A stretch of DNA of 64,000 nucleotides from the NCBI GenBank assembly GCA_004431415.1, contig QPMI01000436.1:248001-312000 (forward strand), written 5' to 3'. The notes beneath the pieces were generated by a model. The model saw only the letters and a program-made list of their open reading frames with translations. It was not told where the DNA came from and ran no database searches. Source of the stretch: Cyanophora paradoxa CCMP329. Its lineage: Eukaryota > Plantae > Glaucophyta. Made by a program: the position numbers and the translations under genes. Shown here piece by piece: positions 12,940 through 25,413 of the stretch (positions are counted from its first letter, which is position 1; every line of letters starts with the position of its first letter).

Positions 12940-13680
12940 GTGAAAATGGGCGGATCGCGGGCCCGCGTACGCATACGCGCGAACGAAGTGCGCTGTATCC
13001 CTTACGATCGCCGCAAGGCAACAGGGGTGCGCCATCGAGCGATCCGGCGTTCATGTGGATCGTGAAAAGCTCCTAAAGCTGCCGGCGCGACCGTCGGACG
13101 TGCACAGGTAGGCAGCCCTCGCGCCCGCATATGCATGTCGGTATCGCTGCGCGCCCGGCCCCGGCCCGATCGTGATCCTGTGAGCGCAGATCCGCACTCT
13201 GATGCTCATTGGATCTCGAGGCGTGACGAGCTCGAGCAGCGAGCGAACGTCGGCCAGCACCGAGCCGCGAACTTGCAATTGAGGTCTATCTGCGGCCTAA
13301 GGCGACTCTGGCATCGATCGCTCCATCTGGGGAGGCTGTAGAGGAACCGCGCGGCTGCAGATCTAGATCTCCGCCACGCGCGATCTCCGCGCGCGCGCCG
13401 GCCGCGGCGCGGCCTGCATGCGCAGCTGCAGCTGCAGCTGGCACCTCCGATCCGTGCGCATGCGCAGCGCGTCCGCGGCCCGGTGCGCCCGCCCACGCGC
13501 CCCACCTGCGTGCGCCCGCACGCGTACGCGCCCGTCCCGCATGAGCTGATGATGACCGGCCGCGCATGCGCATGCGCAGATCCAGCTGCAGCTCTCTAGC
13601 TAGAGACAGAACCTCTCGACCGCGGGCCGGCCGCGGCAGCAGCTCACAGGCCTAGGTCGTAGCTTCCTACGCATTTAGCG
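12940..13680. promoter_or_regulatory. Divergent (bidirectional) promoter region
   Basis: ~740 bp between head-to-head ATGs at 12939 (-) and 13681 (+); rich in TGCGCATGCGCA palindromes. Confidence 0.5.
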
Positions 13681-15363
13681 ATGGATACGGAGGCTTCAGC
13701 GACGGGAGAGGCTCCTCTGGACGCCCCGGCCGCCTCTCCCACCGCGGCCGCCCCCGCCCCGGCGGCCCTGCGGGACCCGCTGGAGCATCTGCTGGAGCGG
13801 CGCGCGGCCGGCGCGGCGGCCGGCGCGGCGGGGTCCGCCGCCATGCCGGCCCTCTCGCCGATCGCTCTGGAGCCGCCGCGGCCAGATCCAGAGCCCGAGG
13901 CGGACTGGGATCCGGAGGCTCTGGCGCTGGAGGCGGAGGCCGCGGCCGCGGCCGGGCCGCCCTCCGTGGATCCGGAGCTGGACCGGATGGACGAGGCCGG
14001 GCAGGCCGCCGACGAGCGCGCCGTGGAGGAGGAGCTGGCGCGGCTCACGGGCGAGGCGCGCCGCGAGGACTGCTGGTGCGCTCCAGATCTAGGTCTAGGT
14101 CTTCGAATTCGAATCTTCGAATTCTAGTACCTAATTGTAAAGCGAATCTTCTAGTGAGCTCTCGATCTATAGCTAGAGTTTCGATTCGGATCTTCTAGTA
14201 CCTAACGCTCGCGCGCCGCGCGCGCCGCGCAGGGAGGTGGACGTGACGCAGCGGTGCCAGCGCGAGTGGCGCAAGCTCGGCGCGCCGCTGCAGCACATCG
14301 TGCTGCACAAGCTTCGCGAGCTGGTTGCCGGTCGCGAGGGGCGCGCGCACCAGACGAACACGGCCAAGTGGCTGAACGTGCGTCGATCCCGACTTCGATC
14401 CCGAAGCCCCTCGTTGCTTCGATCCCGATGCTCGTTGCTTCGATCCCGACAGAGCGGGGGCGGCCTGAACCTCATGGAGAGCTGGATGGGCCGGCGCGGC
14501 CAGGGCAAGGCCTTCCGTCTGCTGTGGGAGGAGGTTCGCATCTCGACTTTCAACTCTTTCGCGTGCCTTCGTTTAATTAATATATATGCGCGCGCCTGGC
14601 CGCAGGTATGGGCATGGTCGGAGACATTCGACTGCTGGCGGGATCGGATCCTTCTCTGGTAGGCATCCTCTCCCAACTGATAAAATTGGATCGATCGATC
14701 TTTACTTCGTCAATCTCACGTTTGCGCGCGCAGGGGACCGTGCCACAAGAACGACATCCACCGAACCGTCGGGCACATCATGAAGGCGCACAGGAGGCGG
14801 GCGGCGCTAGAGCGCGAGGCGCCGCCCCCGAGGCCGCCGGAGCGGCCGCTGCGCTCCGGCGGCGTGGTGCGGCCGCGGCGGCTCCAGGCGGGGCTCGGGA
14901 GGACGGAGAAGGCCGGAGAGGCCGCAGCGAGATTCGACCCGGACTACACTTTGGGGCTGGAGGCCCTCTCCCTTCCCAGGGCGGCGCCCGACGAGCCCGG
15001 AGCACCCGGGCGGACGTCGACGCGCGGGGGCCTCTCCAGCCGGGGTGCAGCATTCATGTGAAGCATAGACCACCTGAAATTTGAATTTGAATTCCGGCGC
15101 GCAGACAAGGAGGAGCTGGCGCGGGTCCGCGCCCGCGCGGGCGAGCTGGCCCGGCGCGAGCTCTCCGGCCGCGGCCGGGATTCGAACCCCGGCAGCGGCC
15201 TGGCCGGGCGCGAACGCGCGAGACACGTCCAGGCCGTCGAGTGCGCCGCGCCCCCTACCCCCCTCCTCTCCCCCTTCCCCTCCATCCCCCCCCCCCCCCC
15301 CCCCTCCACCCTGGCCTTCCCTCCCCTCTCCCACCCCCTCCCCTCCCATCCGCCCCCCCCCCG

Positions 15364-15396
<33 letters not shown>

Positions 15397-16810
15397 CCCA
15401 CCCCCCACACCACCCCCCACCCCTTATTTCATAATTCTCTTTGCTTTATATAGTTCAAACTTAGTGCTTCGGGCTCTATCCCCTCTAGATCTTGCGCCTT
15501 TCTAGCTTATAAAATTAAGCTTTAGTTTGATATTAATGTTTTGAACTTCAACACTACGTTAACTTCGAAATTCAACGCTTACGCTAACCTCCTCGACGTT
15601 GCAGGCAGGAGTGCGCGATCATCTGCGCGGAGGGCCCCCTCGTGGTCGTCGGGCGGTCCGGCACGGGGAAGACAGCCTGCGCCCTCGCCCGGTGCCCTCC
15701 CGGCCTCCAATAAATTCGACTGGCTTCGCTTCGGAAATCGGATAATTCTAGATACATTCTTCTGCTTCTTTTGATCTTGATGCTAGATTCTAGATAGGAA
15801 TCTGATATCATGAGAGAAGCCTCCATTTGAAAATCTATGGACTCTATGGACGTTCTAGAAACTATGATAGAGCTCTGACATTGTTCCGGCAGGATCTGGT
15901 CTCGCTACCACGCGTACTTCAGCATCAGCCGCGGCGTGCCCCTCCTCGACTCCGGCGCGAGCCACCTGCGCATCGTCTACATCACGACGAACTCGATGCT
16001 GCTCAAGAAAGTTCAGCGGGATTTCACTGCTCTGGTGAGCAAGCTCAAGTCGGCTCTGCTTGGCCGGTACAATTTAAGCATTAATGGTTTGCGCAGGAGC
16101 CGGAGCACATGCTCCTCGCGCCGCCCGGCGAGCAGCAGCAGCAGCAGCAGCAGGAGGCAGCCGCCGCCGCAGCCGCGGCCGCGGAGGGCGAGGGCCGCGG
16201 GCGGCAGCGCCGGAGCGAGGCCGCGCCGCTGGGTTCCGGCGACGGCGACCTGGGCGACTGCCTCGCGGACCTGAGGGACGACGCGTACCCCCTGTTCGGT
16301 GCCCCCACCCCCTACCTTTTAGCTTAAGAATTGAATTAAAGCTTCCTACACTAGCCAAAAGACTGAAGATTAAAGCTTCCAAAGCTTAAGCGGGCCTTCA
16401 GATTGAAGCTTCCGTCCCGCCCAAACCGAGTGCTCGCCGAGTCGGTTTTATTTCTGCCGCAGTGACGGCCCGGCGGGACGCAATTGCAAGCGGCTCTAGA
16501 TCTGCGCGGCTCTTTAGGATTAAGATATTTAGGCGTTTATGATATAAGGCCTCCGACTCTTAAGCGTTTACGATTATATTAATTAAGCTTTAGCTTCTAT
16601 CAGCGCTCTCTCATGGGCTAATTGTTTCTGTTTTTTGCTGCCGCAGTGACGGGCCGCAAGTGGCTCGACCTGGTGGACGGGACGCTCGAGCGCCCGTTCT
16701 TCCCGCGGGGCGAGGGCGGGAGGATCGCGGGGCGCCCCGGGCGCTGGGTGGACGACGAGTTCTTCGCCTCGAAGCTCTGGGGTGACCTGGCGCGCGCCGC
16801 GCAGCGCAAG

Positions 16811-16841
<31 letters not shown>

Positions 16842-19800
16842 GCAAAGCGACCCAGCAGCCGCCGCCGCTGCCGCACTCGCAGCTCGTCTGGACGGAGTTC
16901 ATGTCCCTGATCGCGTGAGCGCTGGCGCGGGCGCCGCGCGCCTTGTGTTCTTTCCCATCGAAATCACTAATCTTAAGCGTCTTGGGATTTTGGCTCGCAG
17001 CGGAAGCGTGGAGAGCCTTCAGACGGAGGACGGGTACGTGGACCTCGCGACGTACCAGGAGATGGGGCGGAACCGCTCGCGCCTGGCGAGCGACCGCGAG
17101 GTGCGCTAGCGCTCTATATAGATCTTAGGAGGGAAGTTTAATTGATGTCGTTGGTGAGCTGCGCGGCTTTATATATATGATTTAGCCATGGCCATGGCCA
17201 TAGCTCAATGTGATCTTTTTCATTAATTGGAGGTGCGCTTCCTATGGTGCGCGCGCACTTGTAGCTCTATATAGCTCTATATATATAGCACTATGTTTAT
17301 CCATGGCCATATCTCTATATGATCTTTTTCATTAATTGGAACCGCTCGCGGCCGGCGGGCGACGCGCAGCGGGCGCTGGTCCACGAGCTCTACGGGCAGT
17401 ACCGTCGGGTCAAGGAGGCGGACCGGCTCTTCGACGTGACGGTCAGCGTTTATTTATTCGGGATCGTTCAATTTGATCAGGAGATTATCAAGACTTCTGA
17501 AATCACCGTTGAACTTTAACTGGCAAATAAATCAGCAGTTGGTTAATCCATAAATCGTTTGCTTAACCCGGCCAGAATATGAATGCACCGCCTTTTAAAT
17601 AATCTGCTGACCGCTGTGCCTCATGATCAGGACGTGGTGCATCACATCTACCGCGAGGTCAAGGCGGGGCGGCGCCGCCCCGTCCCCATCCACGAGCTCG
17701 TCGTCGACGAGGCGAGCTCAAGCGCCCTTTGATTTCCTCCACGAGCTTTAAGCCAATTTGATTTGCCCTTAAGCCATACATAGCCGGTCTCCCCTTTATT
17801 CGGATCCAGATCCAGATTATATTTGTAGTGCGAATTTCTTCCTCGCGCGGCTTTAAAACCTCTCGGGGCTGGGCCGTCCTCGAACCTCTCGCGCCCGGGC
17901 CGGCCTCACGGGCCGGCCTTGCAGGTGCAAGACTTCACGGGGGCGGAGCTGGGCCTCGTGGCGACGCTCGCCTCGGACCTCGGGGGCCTCTTCTTCTGCG
18001 GCGACACCTGCCAGACCGTCGCCCGCGGTGCGCCTTATAATTACCATGGCCTTCTTAACTACACTTCACTCGAGCTCATACATTCATTTCTAGGCCTCGC
18101 TTGTTCTTATGCTCTCGTTTCCAGGCCTCGCGTTCCGCATCTGCGACCTGCGGTCCGTCCTGCACCACCTCTTCGGGAAGGGCGCGCCCCTCCGCCTCGA
18201 CCACCTCTCCCTCGTGCGCGGCGCCGGCGCGCTTCTCGCGCGCCAGAGATAACGCTCTGACTCGCGATCGGGCTTTAATTGACGCCCAAACAATGTTAAC
18301 GTTATCGCGTTTTTGCGCGTGGCCAGAACTACCGCTCGCACGACGGCATCCTGGCCTGCGCCGCCGTCTGCGTCGACATGCTCCTCGTCCTCTTCCCCAA
18401 GGAGATCGACGAACTCCCTCGCGACCAAGGCGCGTGCACGGTTGACATGTCGACTTCGCTCGACTCTAGATCTGATAATCCTGTGCCATGGCCAGGCCTT
18501 CGCTCGGGGCTTCCGCCGTCCCTGCTCCGCGCGTCCAGCGAGCCCAGCCTCACCACATTCCTCTTCGGCTCCGCTGCGTCTTCGAATTCGGGCGGCGCGG
18601 CCCCCTCCTTCGGGCCCGACCAGGTCAATATTTCCGCGCTCTCTGTATATTTAAACCTGGAAACTTTATATCGTTTAAACAATGAATATACAAACCTGGA
18701 AACTTTATATTGTTTACACTCGCGCTTTAATTTCTGATCTGATCTGTGATCTTTGAGCTGTGGCCAGGTCGTCATCGTGCGGAGCGTGGCCAGCGCGCGG
18801 GGCGAGCGGCTGCGGGCGCAGCTGCGGCGCCTGCTCAGCGACTCGATCGTGTTGACGGTGGAGGAGGCGAAGGGCCTCGAGTTCGAGGAGGTCCTCCTGT
18901 GCGCTTTCCGTTCTCTATATAATCCTTGAAATATTAATTTGACGTCATTTACACTTTGATTCTCTATATAAACATTGCATGAAACTTTGCACTACCTTCC
19001 CTGACATTCTATATTATTACGAAACGGCTGATGGCCGCGGGGCAGGTTCAACTTCTTCACGGACGGACCGGCCTTGGACGAGGGCCCCGCCGCGGCCGCG
19101 GGCCCCAAGCGGGGCGGGAAGGAGGCCCCGCTCCTCCCCGAGGAGCTGAGGCAGCGGGGCTCGGCGGCGCGCGCCCGCATGTGGCAGGGCGCGGTGCAGG
19201 CGGGGCGGGAGGAGGTGCTGGCGCGCGCGAGCCCCGCCGCGCATTTGGACCCGGATCCGGCCGAAGCTAGCGCCGGCCGCGGGCCCTCCTCGCGATCGGT
19301 CCGTCGACGCCGTCACCTCGAATTCCATCAATGTTTCGACGCCTTTCGCTTACTTTTCGCGTTTTCGAAGGCACACTTCGACCCGTACGCCAACCGCCTC
19401 GTCGCGACGGAGCTGAAGCACCTGTACACGTCGCTCACCCGTGCCAAGACCGCCGTCTGGTGCGCGCCTTCTTAGAAACTTGATCTAATCCAATTTCGAT
19501 TCACGTTGCAATATTAATAGGATCTTTGACGAGGACGAGAAGGCGCGGAAGCCGATGTTCGATCTGCTCGCCGAAGCGCGCGTCGTCGAGGTCCGCTTGC
19601 AACTGGATCTAGATCGCTCGATTAAATTTCTTTCGTTCGACTTGAGCTCTGTGTTTACGTACATGTACAGTCCGTCGCGGAGGACGCGGCGATGGCCATG
19701 GGCGGCGTCGCGCTGTCGAGGGCGACCGGCACGCCGGAGCAGTGGCGGCGGCGCGGCCTCTCGTACATGGAGGCCGGCCTGTTCGGGCAGGCGGAGCTCG

Positions 19801-22800
19801 CGTTCCGCAGGGGCGGGGACGAGCGGCTCGCGTCCGTCGCCCGCGCCGAGGTCGAGCTCGCCGCGGCCGGTTCGCAATTTCTATAAACGGATTCTAAGCA
19901 ATCATGAAGTTCGAATTATTTCAGACGCTGTCAAGGACGAGCGCAAGCGGAAAGGAAGGCTGCTGGTCGCCGCGAGGCTGTTCGAGAGCGCGGACGAAAA
20001 GTCGCGCTCCGCCGACTGCTACGAAGCGTGCGCTCTTCTCTGCCTTGTCCTCCGGATCCCCGTCCTGCGTGTAAAATTCTTACACTTGACACAGCGTGGG
20101 CGACCGCGAGAAAGCACGCAGCGTCGGCGGGCTGCCCTGGTTGGAGCAATGGGCGGCGAAGCTGCTCTCGAAGAGCGGCTGTGAGGCCGCGGTGTATGGG
20201 GAGGCGGCCAAGGAACTCGAGCTCGCGCAACTGGCATCGGCGGACTTCGACGGCAGCAGCGGCAGCGCGGTCGGGTCTGCAGAGCGAGAGGAGATGCAGG
20301 AGCTCAAGAGCTCGCTGCGAGCACGGGCCGCCGAGCTCTTCGGGCGGGCGGCGGCGGTCGGGCAGAAGTCGCAGGCCCCTCGGAAGCAGGTGCACGCTTG
20401 GGCGACGCAGGCGGTGGATATCTGGTTGGACTTGGGCTCGCGTTTCGCACACGCTTCCAATTCCGCCGAGGTGCGCCGCACATATCTTCCACGAAATTCG
20501 ACCGACCCTCGAACTGTCTTTAATTTGACTGCCGTTTTTGGCGCAGTCGTTCCGCGTCTTCGCTGAAGTCTGCGACACGAGCGACGGCGACACGAGCAGG
20601 CTGCTCTCGCTGCGGGCGGCGGCTCGGCGGACCCGGGACACCGGGGCCCTGAAGAGGGCGGCCGAGCTGGAGTGCGCGAGGATGGTGCGGGCGGCAGAGG
20701 CGGCGGACCAGCGGGCCAAGGAGGCGCTCGGGCGGTGCGCGTGGCGGGAGGGCGAGGACCTGGCGAGGGAGGCCGTCGCAAGGTGGGCGGAGCTGCAGAG
20801 GCGCGCCCCGAGAGCCCACGCGCAGCACCGCGAGGCGGCCGACGCGGTGCGTGCGCTTTACTTGTGCGCGCGATTTGTAGATCGGCCGAGCAGCTGACGA
20901 TCGGCGCAGGCGGTTGTGCGGCTCGCGACCGCCCTGTGCACCCTGGCGGGCCTCTCCAAAGGAAAGGAGCCGCGTCTCGCGGCCTCCCGCGTCACCGAGG
21001 CCGTGGAAAACCTTGCGGGCATTACTGCCCGCTACGGGCCGGCGCGCAGCCTCGTCATGCGGATGCTCGGCGGATCGCTGAAGCTCGGCCCTTGCGGCTC
21101 GTGGGCAATGCTGCACAGGAGGCGGACCGCACTGGCAGCGGCACTCGCCTCCGTTATCAGTGGCGTGCGCACGGACGTCGACCGCGACGCCGACATGGCC
21201 AGGGCGTGCGCAGCAGTAGCCGATCACATCACCGACTGTCTTCTCGAGTCAGTCGATGACCGTATCATGTCGGTATTCTATACCTGTGCGGTCTCAGCGG
21301 CCATGTTTTGGCAGCATGCGGGCCGCTTTGCCACAGACAGCAAAGAACGCGCATCGTTTGCGTTTGCAGCAATGGAGATGTGGTTTATGGCGGTTTCCGG
21401 ATATCGATCCATCGATATCGGAACTCGCCCGCACGTTAGCGCTTCCATGGTAAGAGCTTCGAATTTCGAATACTGCTTCGCCATCTTATAATGAATATTA
21501 GATCTACTTATTATTTACAACCGACATTCATACTGTTCCTTCGCAGGCTAACGCTTGTCACCTTCTTTCCCGGGAGCTCGTCGAATGCGGGTTCGAGTTC
21601 CTCGACGACGCCCTTCGCGTGGCCCGCATGGCCGCGGACTTGGACCCGACGGACGACGCCCTCCGCTGGCTCGGCAATCTGCAGCGAATGCTGGAGACAG
21701 TCGAGCATTCCCAGGCTTCCGTGGACATGTGCGCCGTACCGGTGCCCGACCAGACGCAGCAGCTCGCGGAACGCGCCTGCGAGGACGGCCGCTGGGACGA
21801 GGCCGAGCGCCACGCCCGGTCGGCTCTGACCGGCTGGCAGGCGCTTCGCGAGAAGGCGCAGGAGCCAAACAAGAGCGCCGCATGCACCCGGGCAGCCCAC
21901 GAGGTGCGACCGGCAGGGTCAAGCTGCAGCTTGAAGCCGACTCCAGAGATTCATTTGCCCAAATTAACCTTAATTCAAAGATCGCTCCCGTTTGTGACGC
22001 CGGAAAACCGCGCAGACGTCGCTGCTGCTCGCGCGGGCGCTCGTCGGGCAGCAGCGGCCCGAGGACGCCCTGCTCGCGCTGGGCGAGTCGTTCCTGCGGG
22101 ACACGGCGGCCGCGGACCTCCTCATCGCTGCGCTGGAGGCGGCGAAGCAGAAGCCACCGGAGACGACGGAGACCCTCCGGCAGAGGGTGGCGGCCATGTG
22201 GCCGATCGTCGAGTCCGACTGCGAGCACCTCAAGAAACTCCCGTCCGACTATCTCCACAAGATGTACTACGCCGCCGCGGAGAGCCTCGTCATCCACGCG
22301 CCGCGAGGCGAGATCGACCTCCGCGAATTCGTGATCAGCCAGCGAGTGCAGGCGATTTTCTGGCGGCGCGCAGCGGACGTGACCATAGATTCGACTTTGA
22401 TGGAGAAGTGCGGGCGCAACGCCGTCGAATCGTGGAAGCGCTCGAATCCGCACGCGAGCCCTACTGGCCACGTCGACGTGCGCATGCGCAGTCCGGCCTC
22501 GAAACGCTTAATTATTTTTTTGGCTGCGCGCTGCTGATTTATTAATTACATCGTTGTTTCGCATGCACAGGGGGCGCACATCTACACTCGGCTCGCGTTG
22601 TCGCTGGAGAACCAATTCAAACTAACGGAAGCGATGCACTGCATAAAGCACGCGCTGCATCACGGCCCAAACGACCCGACCGCGACCCAGGCGCGGGCGA
22701 GGCTTCAGAAACTCCACCCGCTGATGGTCAAACAAGCCCGGATCCAGCTGCACGCGTTCACGGTGGCGCACCGCACCGAAATGGGCTCGGAGACGCCGCG

Positions 22801-25413
22801 AGACCTCGCGGAAAAGACTTGGAAAATGGCGGTCGCCGGGGATGCCGCCGACGTGGACGGCGCCGACCTCGCGATCGCCACCAGCGACGACCTGCACCTG
22901 GCGGGAGAGTCGCAGATCGCCGCGGCAACGGCCGCGACGACCGCGGAGCGGTGGGACGAGGTCGCGCTGTTCGCGAGGCGCGCGATTCGGCTGTTCAAGG
23001 AGCTGGACGCCCGCAGCGCGTGCGCCGTCTACTCAGTCGCCGCGCGCCTGGCCAAGGTGCTCTAATGATTTTTTATATTTAATTTCGGTTGTGAATCGGA
23101 CTCTGAAACGACCCCATGGCCAGGCGAGGTTCCTCTATTCGAAGGCTCTGAGCGGACGCGGCGAGACGAGCGCCGCGGCGGACGAGTTGGAAAAGGCGAG
23201 GGCGGACGACCCGATCAGCGATTTCGAGGCGGATTTCGCCAAGGATTCCGCCGGGGGCGACGGCGACGGGGACGGCGACTCCGAGCGCGGAGACCCGTCC
23301 CTCAGCGCGCAGCTGCAGCGCTCGCTGGAAGTGGCCGGGGCGCAGCTGGCGCAGCCAGAGCTGGGCAAACAGTGCGCGCCGAACGACTGCCTCAAGGGCT
23401 ACGAAGTGAGCGCGCAGCTGGCCTCGACCGTGTACGCGGTGTTCAAGAAGTATCCGGCGGCGCGACGCGGTCCCAGCCCTGGAATGGCGGCCGAGCACGC
23501 CGTAATGGCCGCGGGCTTCGCGCTGCAGGACCTCCGGCCGTCCAGGGCGCTCGGGTGGGCCCGCGTCGCCGTCGACCCCGAGTGGAGGGGCGCAGGCGCG
23601 CCGCCCCAACCCGACGCGGAGGCCCGGGTGAGCGCTGCAGCTATCCATTTCAAGTTTCCATCATACTGTAGCGATCGCGACTTTAATTAATGCACATGTT
23701 GCCTTCAGCGGTGGATCACGCTCGCGAGGTCGCTCGACGCCGTCGGCTCGATCGAGCTGGCTGCCCAGGCCGCCGAGAAGGCCAGGGCCATCTCGCAGAA
23801 GGCCGCCCGCGCGAGACGCGGCGCCGGCGCGCCCGTCGACCCGACGGCCCTCGAACTCCTCTCGAGGCTGCGAAAAGAGGTCGCCCGCAAGGAGGTCAAG
23901 CTCAAGGCCGCGTGTAACGAAGGCGATCGCGACCACGTCGAGAAGGAGGACGCGGCGTTGGCCGTGGAGGCGCAGAACGAGGCCCTGCGGCTGGCGGCGG
24001 AGACGGACTACGCCCGGGCCGAGCAGGAGGCGCGGCGGGCCGTGGAGTGCTGGAGGCGCGCGGGCCTCGACGCGAGCGTAGAGTCCGCAAAGGTGCGACG
24101 TAACCACGGCCAATGACCACGGCCAGTTTATAATGAATGATTAATGAAAGCTGAGTATATATATACATGCATATATATGCTGCATTGCGAATGCAATTGC
24201 AAGCGGCAGCGAAAACGAAGTAGTTAGCGCTGATCATGAGTTATATGATGGGCGTGCATGCATATGCGCTACGCCTTCTCTTCTGTGCAAAGCTGATCAT
24301 GATCGATATCGCGACGCCCTCCCTCAGGCCTTGTGGGCACTCGGGGTCGTGCAGCGGTCGCGGGGGCTGCTCCACGAGGCGGCCGAGACCCTCCGGACCG
24401 CCTCGGGGCTGGATCCCGCCCTCTCCATGCAGGTCCGTCTTCTATAGGTCCGGCTTCTATAGGTCCGGTTTTTATAGGCCCGGCTTTTATAGGTCCGGCT
24501 TTCATAGTTCCGGCTTTTATAGGTCCGGCTTTCATATAAGTAAGGTCCGGCATTCTCCATGCAGGTCCGGCGTCTACCGTACTAGGCTAAATGAATTATT
24601 ACATGGCTGACTGCAACGCAATCTAGCTTCGTAATTTCCCACCTTGCTCTTAGCTATAGCTTCGAAAACCAGCTTAGATCTCCCGCCGCGCTTTAATTTT
24701 AGCTTCGAACTTCGGAATTCGATCTCCTAGCCTATATAGCTAGGCGACCGAGATCTAGAATGTGAAGAATTCAGTGTTCGAATTCAATATATTCCATTGT
24801 AAAATATTCTAGCGGAGATCTAATTGTATTGCTGGCAGGCCGCCCACCTGACGAGCCTCGCACTCTGGGAGCGCGCCAAGGGCGAGACTTCCGCCGCGGA
24901 GTCGTTCCTCCAGAGGCGGCAGCTCGCGCACGTGCGTGCAGATATATAAATTAAAGCGCTGAAGTGATGTAAAGCGGTACTTAACGCGATAGAAAGCGAT
25001 TTATATAAAGCGTAATAAAGCGTTCCTCCAGAGGCGACAGATCGCACACGTGCGTATACGTATTCGTAAGCGTGCACGTGCAGAAATATACACAGAGCGA
25101 TCATCGGATTGATATTTGCCTGCATTTATATGCTAAATTACTCGATGTTAATTGGCTTCGTTCGAATTCGTTCGCAGGCGGAGCGGTGCGCGCGGGTCGC
25201 GCTGGAGGCGTGGGAGCGGCTGTGCGGCTTCGCCCCGCTCCTCGAGCACCGCCACAGGGCCGACGCCGACAAGGTCCGCGGCTCCGATCCCGAATTTCCT
25301 GGAAATTCATGATCAACGTTAACGGGCGGCGGCGGGCCGGGCTGGCGCGCGCCGCGCGTGCGCAGTGCCGTGGGCTTCTCGACCGCGTCCGCCTCGCCCG
25401 CTTGGGCGTGTAG
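13681..25413 (+). CDS. TRANK1/Lba1-like SF1 (UvrD-like) helicase with N-terminal RelE/ParE-like domain and C-terminal TPR-like array
   Basis: Walker A VVGRSGTGKT (15651-15674), Walker B VVDE|VQDF, FCGDTCQTVARG, NYRSHDGIL, GPDQ|VVIVRS, LTVEEAKGLEFEEVL|FNFF, ELKHLYTSLTRAK; then TPR-like EQWRRRGLSYMEAGLFGQAELAFRRGG and >1000 aa of helical repeats; stop at 25413. Confidence 0.9.
24422..24570 (+). repeat. 15-bp intronic minisatellite (ATAGGTCCGGCTTTT-like)
   Basis: About 7 copies seeded at the donor CAG|GTCCG and bounded by a second TCTCCATGCAGGTCCG. Confidence 0.9.

Follow-up and report, generated by a model that had tools for sequence, protein, structure and literature searches.

The gene at positions 13681-24116 (forward strand) of a stretch of the glaucophyte Cyanophora paradoxa CCMP329 genome (assembly GCA_004431415.1, contig QPMI01000436.1, positions 248,001 to 312,000; 64,000 nucleotides, hereafter the window) is a single expressed gene of more than 30 exons. 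It encodes a TRANK1-type protein with a basic domain of about 118 residues ahead of a UvrD-like superfamily 1 (SF1) helicase. From its predicted structure, this N-terminal domain very probably has the RelE/ParE (BECR) fold of prokaryotic toxins, here and throughout the TRANK1 family. What is new is that the RelE-fold domain is family-wide, absent from curated annotation and not confined to the algal gene. The best explanation overall, to which we give a probability of about 0.6, is that the domain serves as an effector ribonuclease (RNase) gated by the helicase and a C-terminal repeat array, in a conflict or defence role.

Likeness to RelE is visible in single exons and in family profiles. With exon 2 (EVDVT...KWLN, translated from 14234-14377) as query against 177,635 PDB sequences, phmmer returned four matches, all of them E. 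coli RelE (E 0.31), with query residues 3-33 in register with RelE 6-36 and EWRKLG identical to RelE residues 14-19; exon 3 alone had no match in the PDB search. Language-model features placed exon 2 nearest to ParE_toxin clusters (0.94) and the whole domain nearest to RelE/ParE, ParE_like and YhaV clusters (0.85-0.86, values to be read as leads only). A profile built from an alignment of 17 domains (A1) placed RelE first among PDB sequences (profile 7-72 against RelE 7-67, E 0.074), and hhalign of A1 with RelE of E. coli K-12 gave a probability of 89% over 63 columns. Nothing was found by hhalign to YoeB.

The predicted structure leads to the same superfamily. AlphaFold2 supplied with A1 gave a model with a predicted local distance difference test score (pLDDT) of 86.4 and a predicted template modelling score of 0.81; the single-sequence model was all-helical with a pLDDT of 42, so that the confident model came solely with the 17-sequence alignment. 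Its strands (4-7, 48-51, 58-62, 72-83 and 88-100) and helices (9-17, 20-34 and 101-117) follow the order strand-helix-helix-strands-helix, in agreement with the RelE/ParE fold of an N-terminal strand, two helices, an antiparallel sheet with three or four more strands and a C-terminal helix; strands 72-83 and 88-100 correspond to the hairpin encoded by exon 4, and helix 101-117 to the C-terminal helix, which runs to about 14800 in exon 5. All of the top 48 Foldseek matches in PDB were RelE, YoeB, YafQ, HigB, HP0892/0894 or Cami1. An exhaustive VIA-align comparison with 48,161 chains ranked members of the RelE/ParE superfamily, including the RelE-like domain of the Txp40 toxin, at positions 1-24 (Z 10.3 to 6.9). 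The best was YafQ (Z 10.3, root-mean-square deviation 2.4 A over 88 residues), with HigB1 at 9.9, Thermus thermophilus and Pyrococcus horikoshii RelE at 9.7-9.8, YoeB at 9.6, Cami1 at 8.9 and ParE at about 8. Rank 25 (Z 5.8) was a further toxin-antitoxin complex, and clearly unrelated folds began at Z 5.7. The fold assignment made in a sequence-only reading of the window thus agrees with the AlphaFold2 model, both structure aligners and hhalign.

That reading had also spliced the domain across four introns, and the joined peptides proved correct in translation and in contigs of two studies, which join the exons in frame at GT..AG borders. We mapped contigs from four public runs (X1, X2, X4 and X5; two studies, one species label) to positions 13600-19500. 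X4 record 12 runs unbroken across 13905-14074, 14232-14377, 14453-14531 and 14604-14657, thereby joining exon 1 to exon 2, and the joints 14377>14453, 14531>14604 and 14657>14733, all GT..AG, recur in X2, X4 and X5. Exon 4 is backed by X4 record 12 and by X5 record 15; X1 record 2 and X2 record 7 end within exon 5 at 15039/15044, record 7 extending to 15044. Because the contigs omit GT..AG introns, we take them to derive from spliced transcripts, although RNA as the run type is a guess. Trp codons straddle the exon 1/2 and exon 4/5 junctions (tg|g).

Used as the sole query against 1.84 billion representative proteins, exon 2 identified P0001 and P0002. P0001 (2132 residues, EukProt tig00020629_g12385.t1) is the deposited model of the gene: exon 2 matches it at 100%, its residues 133-247 carry the same joined exon sequence, the domain occupies residues 130-247, and exon 1 encodes residues 1-131 and ends two bases into the W132 codon; by tblastn it maps to 13681-24113. 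P0002 (1756 residues) is a paralogue, 87% identical over exon 2, with the domain starting at residue 72. Analyses of the joined domain used the sequences of these two proteins. A third match, P0003, is a fibronectin-type repeat protein that was retrieved through the string LQWRKVN and discarded as spurious.

The deposited model contains errors that matter for the helicase. P0001 runs on past the exon 5 donor (15044) and omits the exons at 15105-15240, 15605-15691 (the P-loop), 17368-17440 and 17631-17711; all four are supported by homology to P0002, and the P-loop exon and the two at 17368-17711 also by spliced contigs. Walker A is therefore wrongly missing from the public protein model. P0001 also probably includes a piece of intron at 16462-16533. 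In this region, acceptor-like stretches (..tgccgcagtgacgg..) occur twice, at 16452-16480 and 16638-16665, about 185 bases apart; P0001 uses the first, and P0002 and the reading frame favour the second. The pair may have arisen by local duplication, or one of the two may serve as an alternative 3' splice site.

In the genome, the helicase is complete, as the sequence-only reading had held: GRSGTGKT lies at 15651, and the motifs DE|VQDF, GDTCQT, NYRSH and EAKGLEFEEV are likewise intact, their positions being invariant in a family alignment of domain plus helicase (A2). Motif II (DE|VQDF) is split by a GC-AG intron (17712-17924) that one contig bridges; the joint was reported as 17709>17923, and the true site may lie up to three bases further. 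X5 record 17 joins 15609-15690, in the P-loop exon, to 15892-15961. Exon 6, which none of the spliced contigs covers, resembles P0002 in DK..LARxELSGRG and RH..A.EQECAIIC. Pfam matches on P0002 are UvrD_C_2 (above the cut-off), UvrD-helicase and UvrD_C. The predicted array of more than 1,000 residues of TPR-like repeats held up as a long helical C-terminal part of about 1150 residues, but its TPR character comes from sub-threshold Pfam matches (TPR_1 at 19 bits on P0001, TPR_16 at 21 bits on P0002). Ankyrin families were not found among the Pfam matches of P0001 or P0002, in line with the reported lack of N-terminal ankyrin repeats, and a short acidic leader stands in their place. The N-terminal parts of P0001 and P0002 are 65-78% identical, their helicases 58% and their C-terminal parts 43%, so that the C-terminal part appears to diverge fast between paralogues.

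The gene belongs to a larger set. Searching with the helicase region of P0002 adds six proteins whose EukProt names follow the same scheme, giving eight TRANK1-type proteins in the proteome of this one alga (P0001, P0002, P0004-P0008 and P0011; 989-2132 residues). In seven of the eight, the RelE-fold domain is detectable behind an acidic leader; P0011 has a zf-MYND match instead. The same query retrieves animal TRANK1 from pangolin (5e-70, 32% identity over 76% of the helicase region) and sea spider (2e-65), an oyster protein (8.5e-64) and homologues in fungi, green algae, Selaginella and Closterium, and by this likeness the closest named relatives of the helicase are TRANK1 proteins.

Comparison across these homologues shows how far the domain extends. 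A hidden Markov model (HMM) built from the seven algal paralogues only finds it in pangolin TRANK1 (830-929, P-loop at 1074), the oyster protein (1035-1151, P-loop at 1256) and the metagenomic homologue P0009 (205-310, P-loop at 423), and also in Glomeromycota proteins, Ganoderma, Jimgerdemannia and Micractinium. Wherever the protein model includes a P-loop, the match starts about 195-250 residues before GRSGTGKT; in homologues where the profile detects it, the domain itself lies about 110-250 residues upstream of the P-loop. A wider profile adds weak, co-located matches in Selaginella, the chytrid Allomyces, Closterium and the sea spider Nymphon. A word-based homologue search with the domain alone gave no candidate, and with the region in its full-length context only the two paralogues. 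Two members, P0016 and P0018, carry an extra Upf1-like helicase module (Pfam AAA_11/AAA_12).

By its profile matches, the RelE-fold domain is thus a conserved module upstream of the P-loop across the TRANK1 family in animals, fungi, green algae, a lycophyte and a glaucophyte. The fusion is not peculiar to this gene; in pangolin TRANK1 the domain lies in the region before the P-loop, where the sequence-only reading had suggested a comparison. The domain-helicase layout seems to be ancestral to the family, with ankyrin repeats apparently added in front in animals. Because the domain is found family-wide, animal TRANK1 differs by its added ankyrin repeats, not by lacking the RelE-fold domain.

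Catalysis is a separate matter from fold. The catalytic residues of E. coli RelE are K52, K54, R61, R81 and Y87, and YoeB- and YafQ-type relatives of RelE use Glu/Arg/His chemistry. In the hhalign alignment, Arg202 of FRLLW (codon 14516-14518, exon 3) falls on R61, the conserved Glu189 (codon 14477-14479, exon 3) on K52, and Trp, Tyr or Lys on K54. Together with a His after the last strand (His229 in the algal protein, codon 14744-14746, exon 5), the Glu and Arg are present in 10 of the 17 A1 domains, namely those of six algal paralogues, pangolin, oyster, Jimgerdemannia and Ganoderma, as well as in a locus from a bacterial genome bin (L003, described below). Both Micractinium proteins have lost all three. 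Domains with the full trio have isoelectric points of 8.0-10.3, and those without His or without all three 5.6-5.7, except P0024 at 8.8. Joint retention and loss of the trio, together with basic charge, is the pattern expected of an RNA-directed Glu/Arg/His active site, albeit in a small sample. We put the chance that the domain is an active RNase at slightly short of even.

Several observations weigh against an active, toxin-like effector. For the fold, Pfam, whose RelE/ParE models match the RelE-fold domain in none of the 17 members, returned nothing at E up to 10 for any of them and had no match to the exons taken singly; NCBIfam and PADLOC were both blank on the domain, and no sequence E-value against PDB fell below 0.05 (0.074 for the profile, 0.31 for exon 2). 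For catalysis, the RelE motif pattern had been read as matching throughout. The Arg of FRLLW bears this out, but it is the only one of the five RelE catalytic residues that is conserved, with Glu in place of K52, so that the set of RelE proper is absent. The C-terminal register of CHKNDIH against R81/Y87 is uncertain; as aligned, His229 comes to lie near K80/R81. Glomeromycota and P0009 have only part of the trio, and the sole invariant family positions, W3 and G36 (with the near-invariant W96), look structural. For context, the domain lies within a multi-exon gene, the leader has no family match, and an antitoxin-like partner was not found. Tethered to a protein of about 250 kDa, the domain may have poor reach to the ribosomal A site, and a tie between the gene and infection is nowhere in these data.

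Some of these points would suit a RelE fold without catalysis, acting as a structural, RNA- or ribosome-binding or autoregulatory module of the helicase, which is the main rival explanation. ParE proteins, after all, have the RelE fold but are not RNases, and the hydrophobic or structural nature of W3, G36 and W96 and the loss of RelE K52, K54, R81 and Y87 would be natural in such a module. Moreover, several lineages that lost Glu, Arg or His retain the domain at the same place, which indicates that it has some use without the trio. A purely non-catalytic role is harder to reconcile with a Glu/Arg/His set that was kept from glaucophyte to mammals and lost as a set in Micractinium, with the basic charge of the trio-keeping domains, which resembles that of RNA-binding toxins, and with nearest structures that are the RNases YafQ, HigB, RelE and YoeB and not ParE. 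We consider it a lesser possibility, but one to be taken seriously.

Under the effector explanation that we prefer, the RelE-fold domain would be the business end of the protein, an endoribonuclease with a putative Glu189/Arg202/His229 set in place of the Lys/Arg/Tyr set of RelE, and would cut mRNA at or near the ribosome. Gating would fall to the ATPase/helicase and the fast-diverging repeat array, as in one-polypeptide proteins that combine a sensor, a nucleoside triphosphatase (NTPase) and an effector, and a flexible, low-complexity linker rich in Pro and Arg could give the domain its reach. The nuclease, ATPase and sensor architecture seen in the sequence-only reading stands as far as its parts go (RelE-fold domain, helicase and helical C terminus); its nuclease activity and defence role are predictions. 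Eight copies in one proteome with differing C-terminal ends would suit a conflict or defence role, which we hold tentatively for TRANK1-type proteins, at somewhat less confidence than catalysis itself.

The acidic leader that precedes the domain in all seven paralogues (28 Asp and Glu against 9 Lys and Arg in exon 1, with no Pfam match when the exon was searched singly) raises the idea, and at this point only the idea, of a built-in antitoxin; a complex prediction for leader and domain scored 0.26, which is below the mark and counts neither for nor against the idea.

A ribosome-directed mode is plausible in light of the literature: E. coli RelE cleaves on eukaryotic ribosomes (PMC11980606), Cami1 provides a defence precedent (see below), human TRANK1 is listed in an interferon-beta signature (PMC12231911) and TRANK1 is listed as an interferon-stimulated gene in a study of Aplysia (PMC8195618). 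The boldest form of the proposal, that the domain is a ribosome-directed endoribonuclease kept from glaucophytes to mammals and that TRANK1 proteins are helicase-gated immune effectors that shut off translation, is one that we regard as less likely than not.

An active RNase might also work in housekeeping, in RNA surveillance or ribosome quality control by analogy with Upf1 and SMG6, and not in defence. Broad conservation of the family across eukaryotes and the Upf1-like module in P0016 and P0018 would accord with this; eight paralogues in one proteome, whose C-terminal parts diverge fast, the place of animal TRANK1 among interferon-induced genes (PMC12231911, PMC8195618) and the repeated loss of active-site residues in some lineages, unusual for a core housekeeping enzyme, make it improbable. 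Finally, that the RelE likeness is a chance or wrong-splice artefact is nearly excluded, since for all that the PDB sequence E-values of 0.07-0.3 are not significant alone and Pfam is blank, contigs of two studies confirm the splice model, and phmmer, profile, hhalign, language-model features and two structure aligners all lead to one superfamily only.

Set beside known systems, the algal domain shares fold and element order with the toxins RelE, YafQ, YoeB, HigB and ParE (Z 8-10.3) and, like them, is small and basic. Its sequence likeness to E. coli RelE runs from strand 1 to strand 3 and includes EWRKLG and the Arg of the YRLVY strand. RelE toxins are free-standing proteins of about 90 residues with an antitoxin gene, whereas the algal domain, divided among five exons, is embedded in a protein exceeding 2100 residues; its hairpin between strands 3 and 4 is longer, and it carries its Glu/Arg/His set in the region of K52/K54/R81/Y87. 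Animal TRANK1 has a homologous helicase and the same RelE-fold domain before the P-loop, with Glu/Arg/His kept, but adds about 800-1000 N-terminal residues with ankyrin repeats where the algal gene has its short acidic leader.

Two prokaryotic proteins come closest in architecture. Cami1, a CRISPR ancillary ribonuclease with CARF and RelE domains (PDB 8phb, 8phj), likewise fuses a RelE-fold effector to a sensor in one polypeptide, and according to 10.64898/2026.09.30.754977, where it is cited, its cleavage of ribosome-bound mRNA halts translation upon a defence signal. It differs in being prokaryotic and 384 residues long, in a CARF sensor that binds cyclic oligoadenylate, in having no helicase and in the C-terminal position of its RelE domain. 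The second, reported in the same preprint (10.64898/2026.09.30.754977), is a helicase of prokaryotes that lies beside Tiamat Type I-K and carries a RelE-like domain at its N terminus. As described there, it has the same order of parts and a defence setting, the likeness being one of description and not of compared sequences; it belongs to a multi-gene bacterial system, and a TPR-like array is not reported there.

A scan of bacterial and archaeal genomes, one per species, with A2 gave at least five loci among the matches listed (L003-L007), none clearly bacterial with the domain-helicase architecture. L003 (JBBAPG010000025.1, a 14.9-kb contig in a Polaromonas bin of metagenome-assembled genomes, MAGs) is one unbroken frame of at least 4283 codons that starts from base 3 and fills the whole locus. 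It has the domain at residues 1609-1747 (A1 HMM, 4e-16), with Glu, Arg and His kept, and GRSGTGKT at 1923, 176 residues past the domain end, in a TRANK1-type helicase. The contig may be bacterial and encode a giant homologue, or else be eukaryotic, intron-less and misbinned. L004 (CBDIIG010000002.1, Sediminibacterium MAG bin) is a 440-kb contig with 27% GC and TRANK1-like helicase pieces in the part fetched, where no open reading frame of 150 codons or more was found under genetic code 11, which suggests a non-bacterial origin, from a eukaryote or an organism with another genetic code, in a bacterial bin. L005-L007 are distant UvrD-like matches only.

Table 1 Features of the TRANK1-type gene in the window, with the basis for each.
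Feature	Positions	Strand	Basis
Exon 1: start codon and acidic, Ala/Pro-rich leader	13681..14075	+	Open reading frame from ATG at 13681; tblastn of P0001 100% identical
Exon 2: strand 1 and helices 1-2 of the RelE-fold domain	14233..14377	+	Translation, PDB sequence search, language-model features, spliced contigs
Exon 3: two sheet strands	14453..14533	+	Translation; hhalign to RelE; joints in three runs
Exon 4: long beta-hairpin, end of strand 3 and most of strand 4	14606..14658	+	Read from sequence; contained in P0001
Exon 5: end of last strand, C-terminal helix of the domain, Pro/Arg-rich linker	14734..15044	+	Translation (GPCHKNDIH from 14735), contigs
Exon 6 (inferred): helical stretch directly 5' of the helicase core	15105..15240	+	GT..AG borders, likeness to P0002
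Exon 7: Walker A / P-loop GRSGTGKT	15605..15691	+	Motif scan, contig, 86% identical to P0002 318-346
Remaining exons of the UvrD-like SF1 helicase, TRANK1 type	15893..19868	+	Sequence, contig joints, tblastn of P0001/P0002, Pfam on P0002
C-terminal part, about 1150 residues, helical, TPR-like	19921..24116	+	tblastn; stop codon 24114-24116

The window is GC-rich (52-70%), and the introns of the gene (Table 1) are short and richer in AT. Intron 2 (14378-14452) consists mostly of four copies of a tcgatcccga-like unit, and short local repeats occur in further introns as well, such as the ctctatata units at 17110-17330. A long C-rich or poly-C tract at 15255-15420 lies within the intron 5' of the P-loop exon, and contigs break there. 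At 14301, contigs from all four runs diverge into one common unrelated sequence, which probably stems from transcripts of a different gene with a short GC-rich stretch in common, or from chimeric contigs.

To our knowledge, RelE/ParE toxins are regarded as essentially prokaryotic. TRANK1 has been studied as a bipolar-disorder risk gene, and we know of no molecular function for this large protein. A 2025 survey of mono- and multidomain RelE/ParE toxins lists few eukaryotic toxin-antitoxin fusions and no fusion to a helicase or TPR (PMC11980606). In our incomplete paper collection, literature linking TRANK1 with RelE, ParE, UvrD or NTPase was not found, and a prior description is possible.

For a poorly understood family, the RelE-fold domain provides a testable hypothesis, that TRANK1-type proteins cut RNA under the control of an ATPase and a repeat array, with three named residues (Glu189, Arg202 and His229) as targets for mutation. 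With it, the sensor-NTPase-effector plan of bacterial defence would gain a eukaryotic example. Should the boldest form of the proposal prove true, the family would supply the first native eukaryotic role for a RelE-type toxin domain, and human TRANK1, which is interferon-induced and a risk locus for bipolar disorder, would gain a molecular function.

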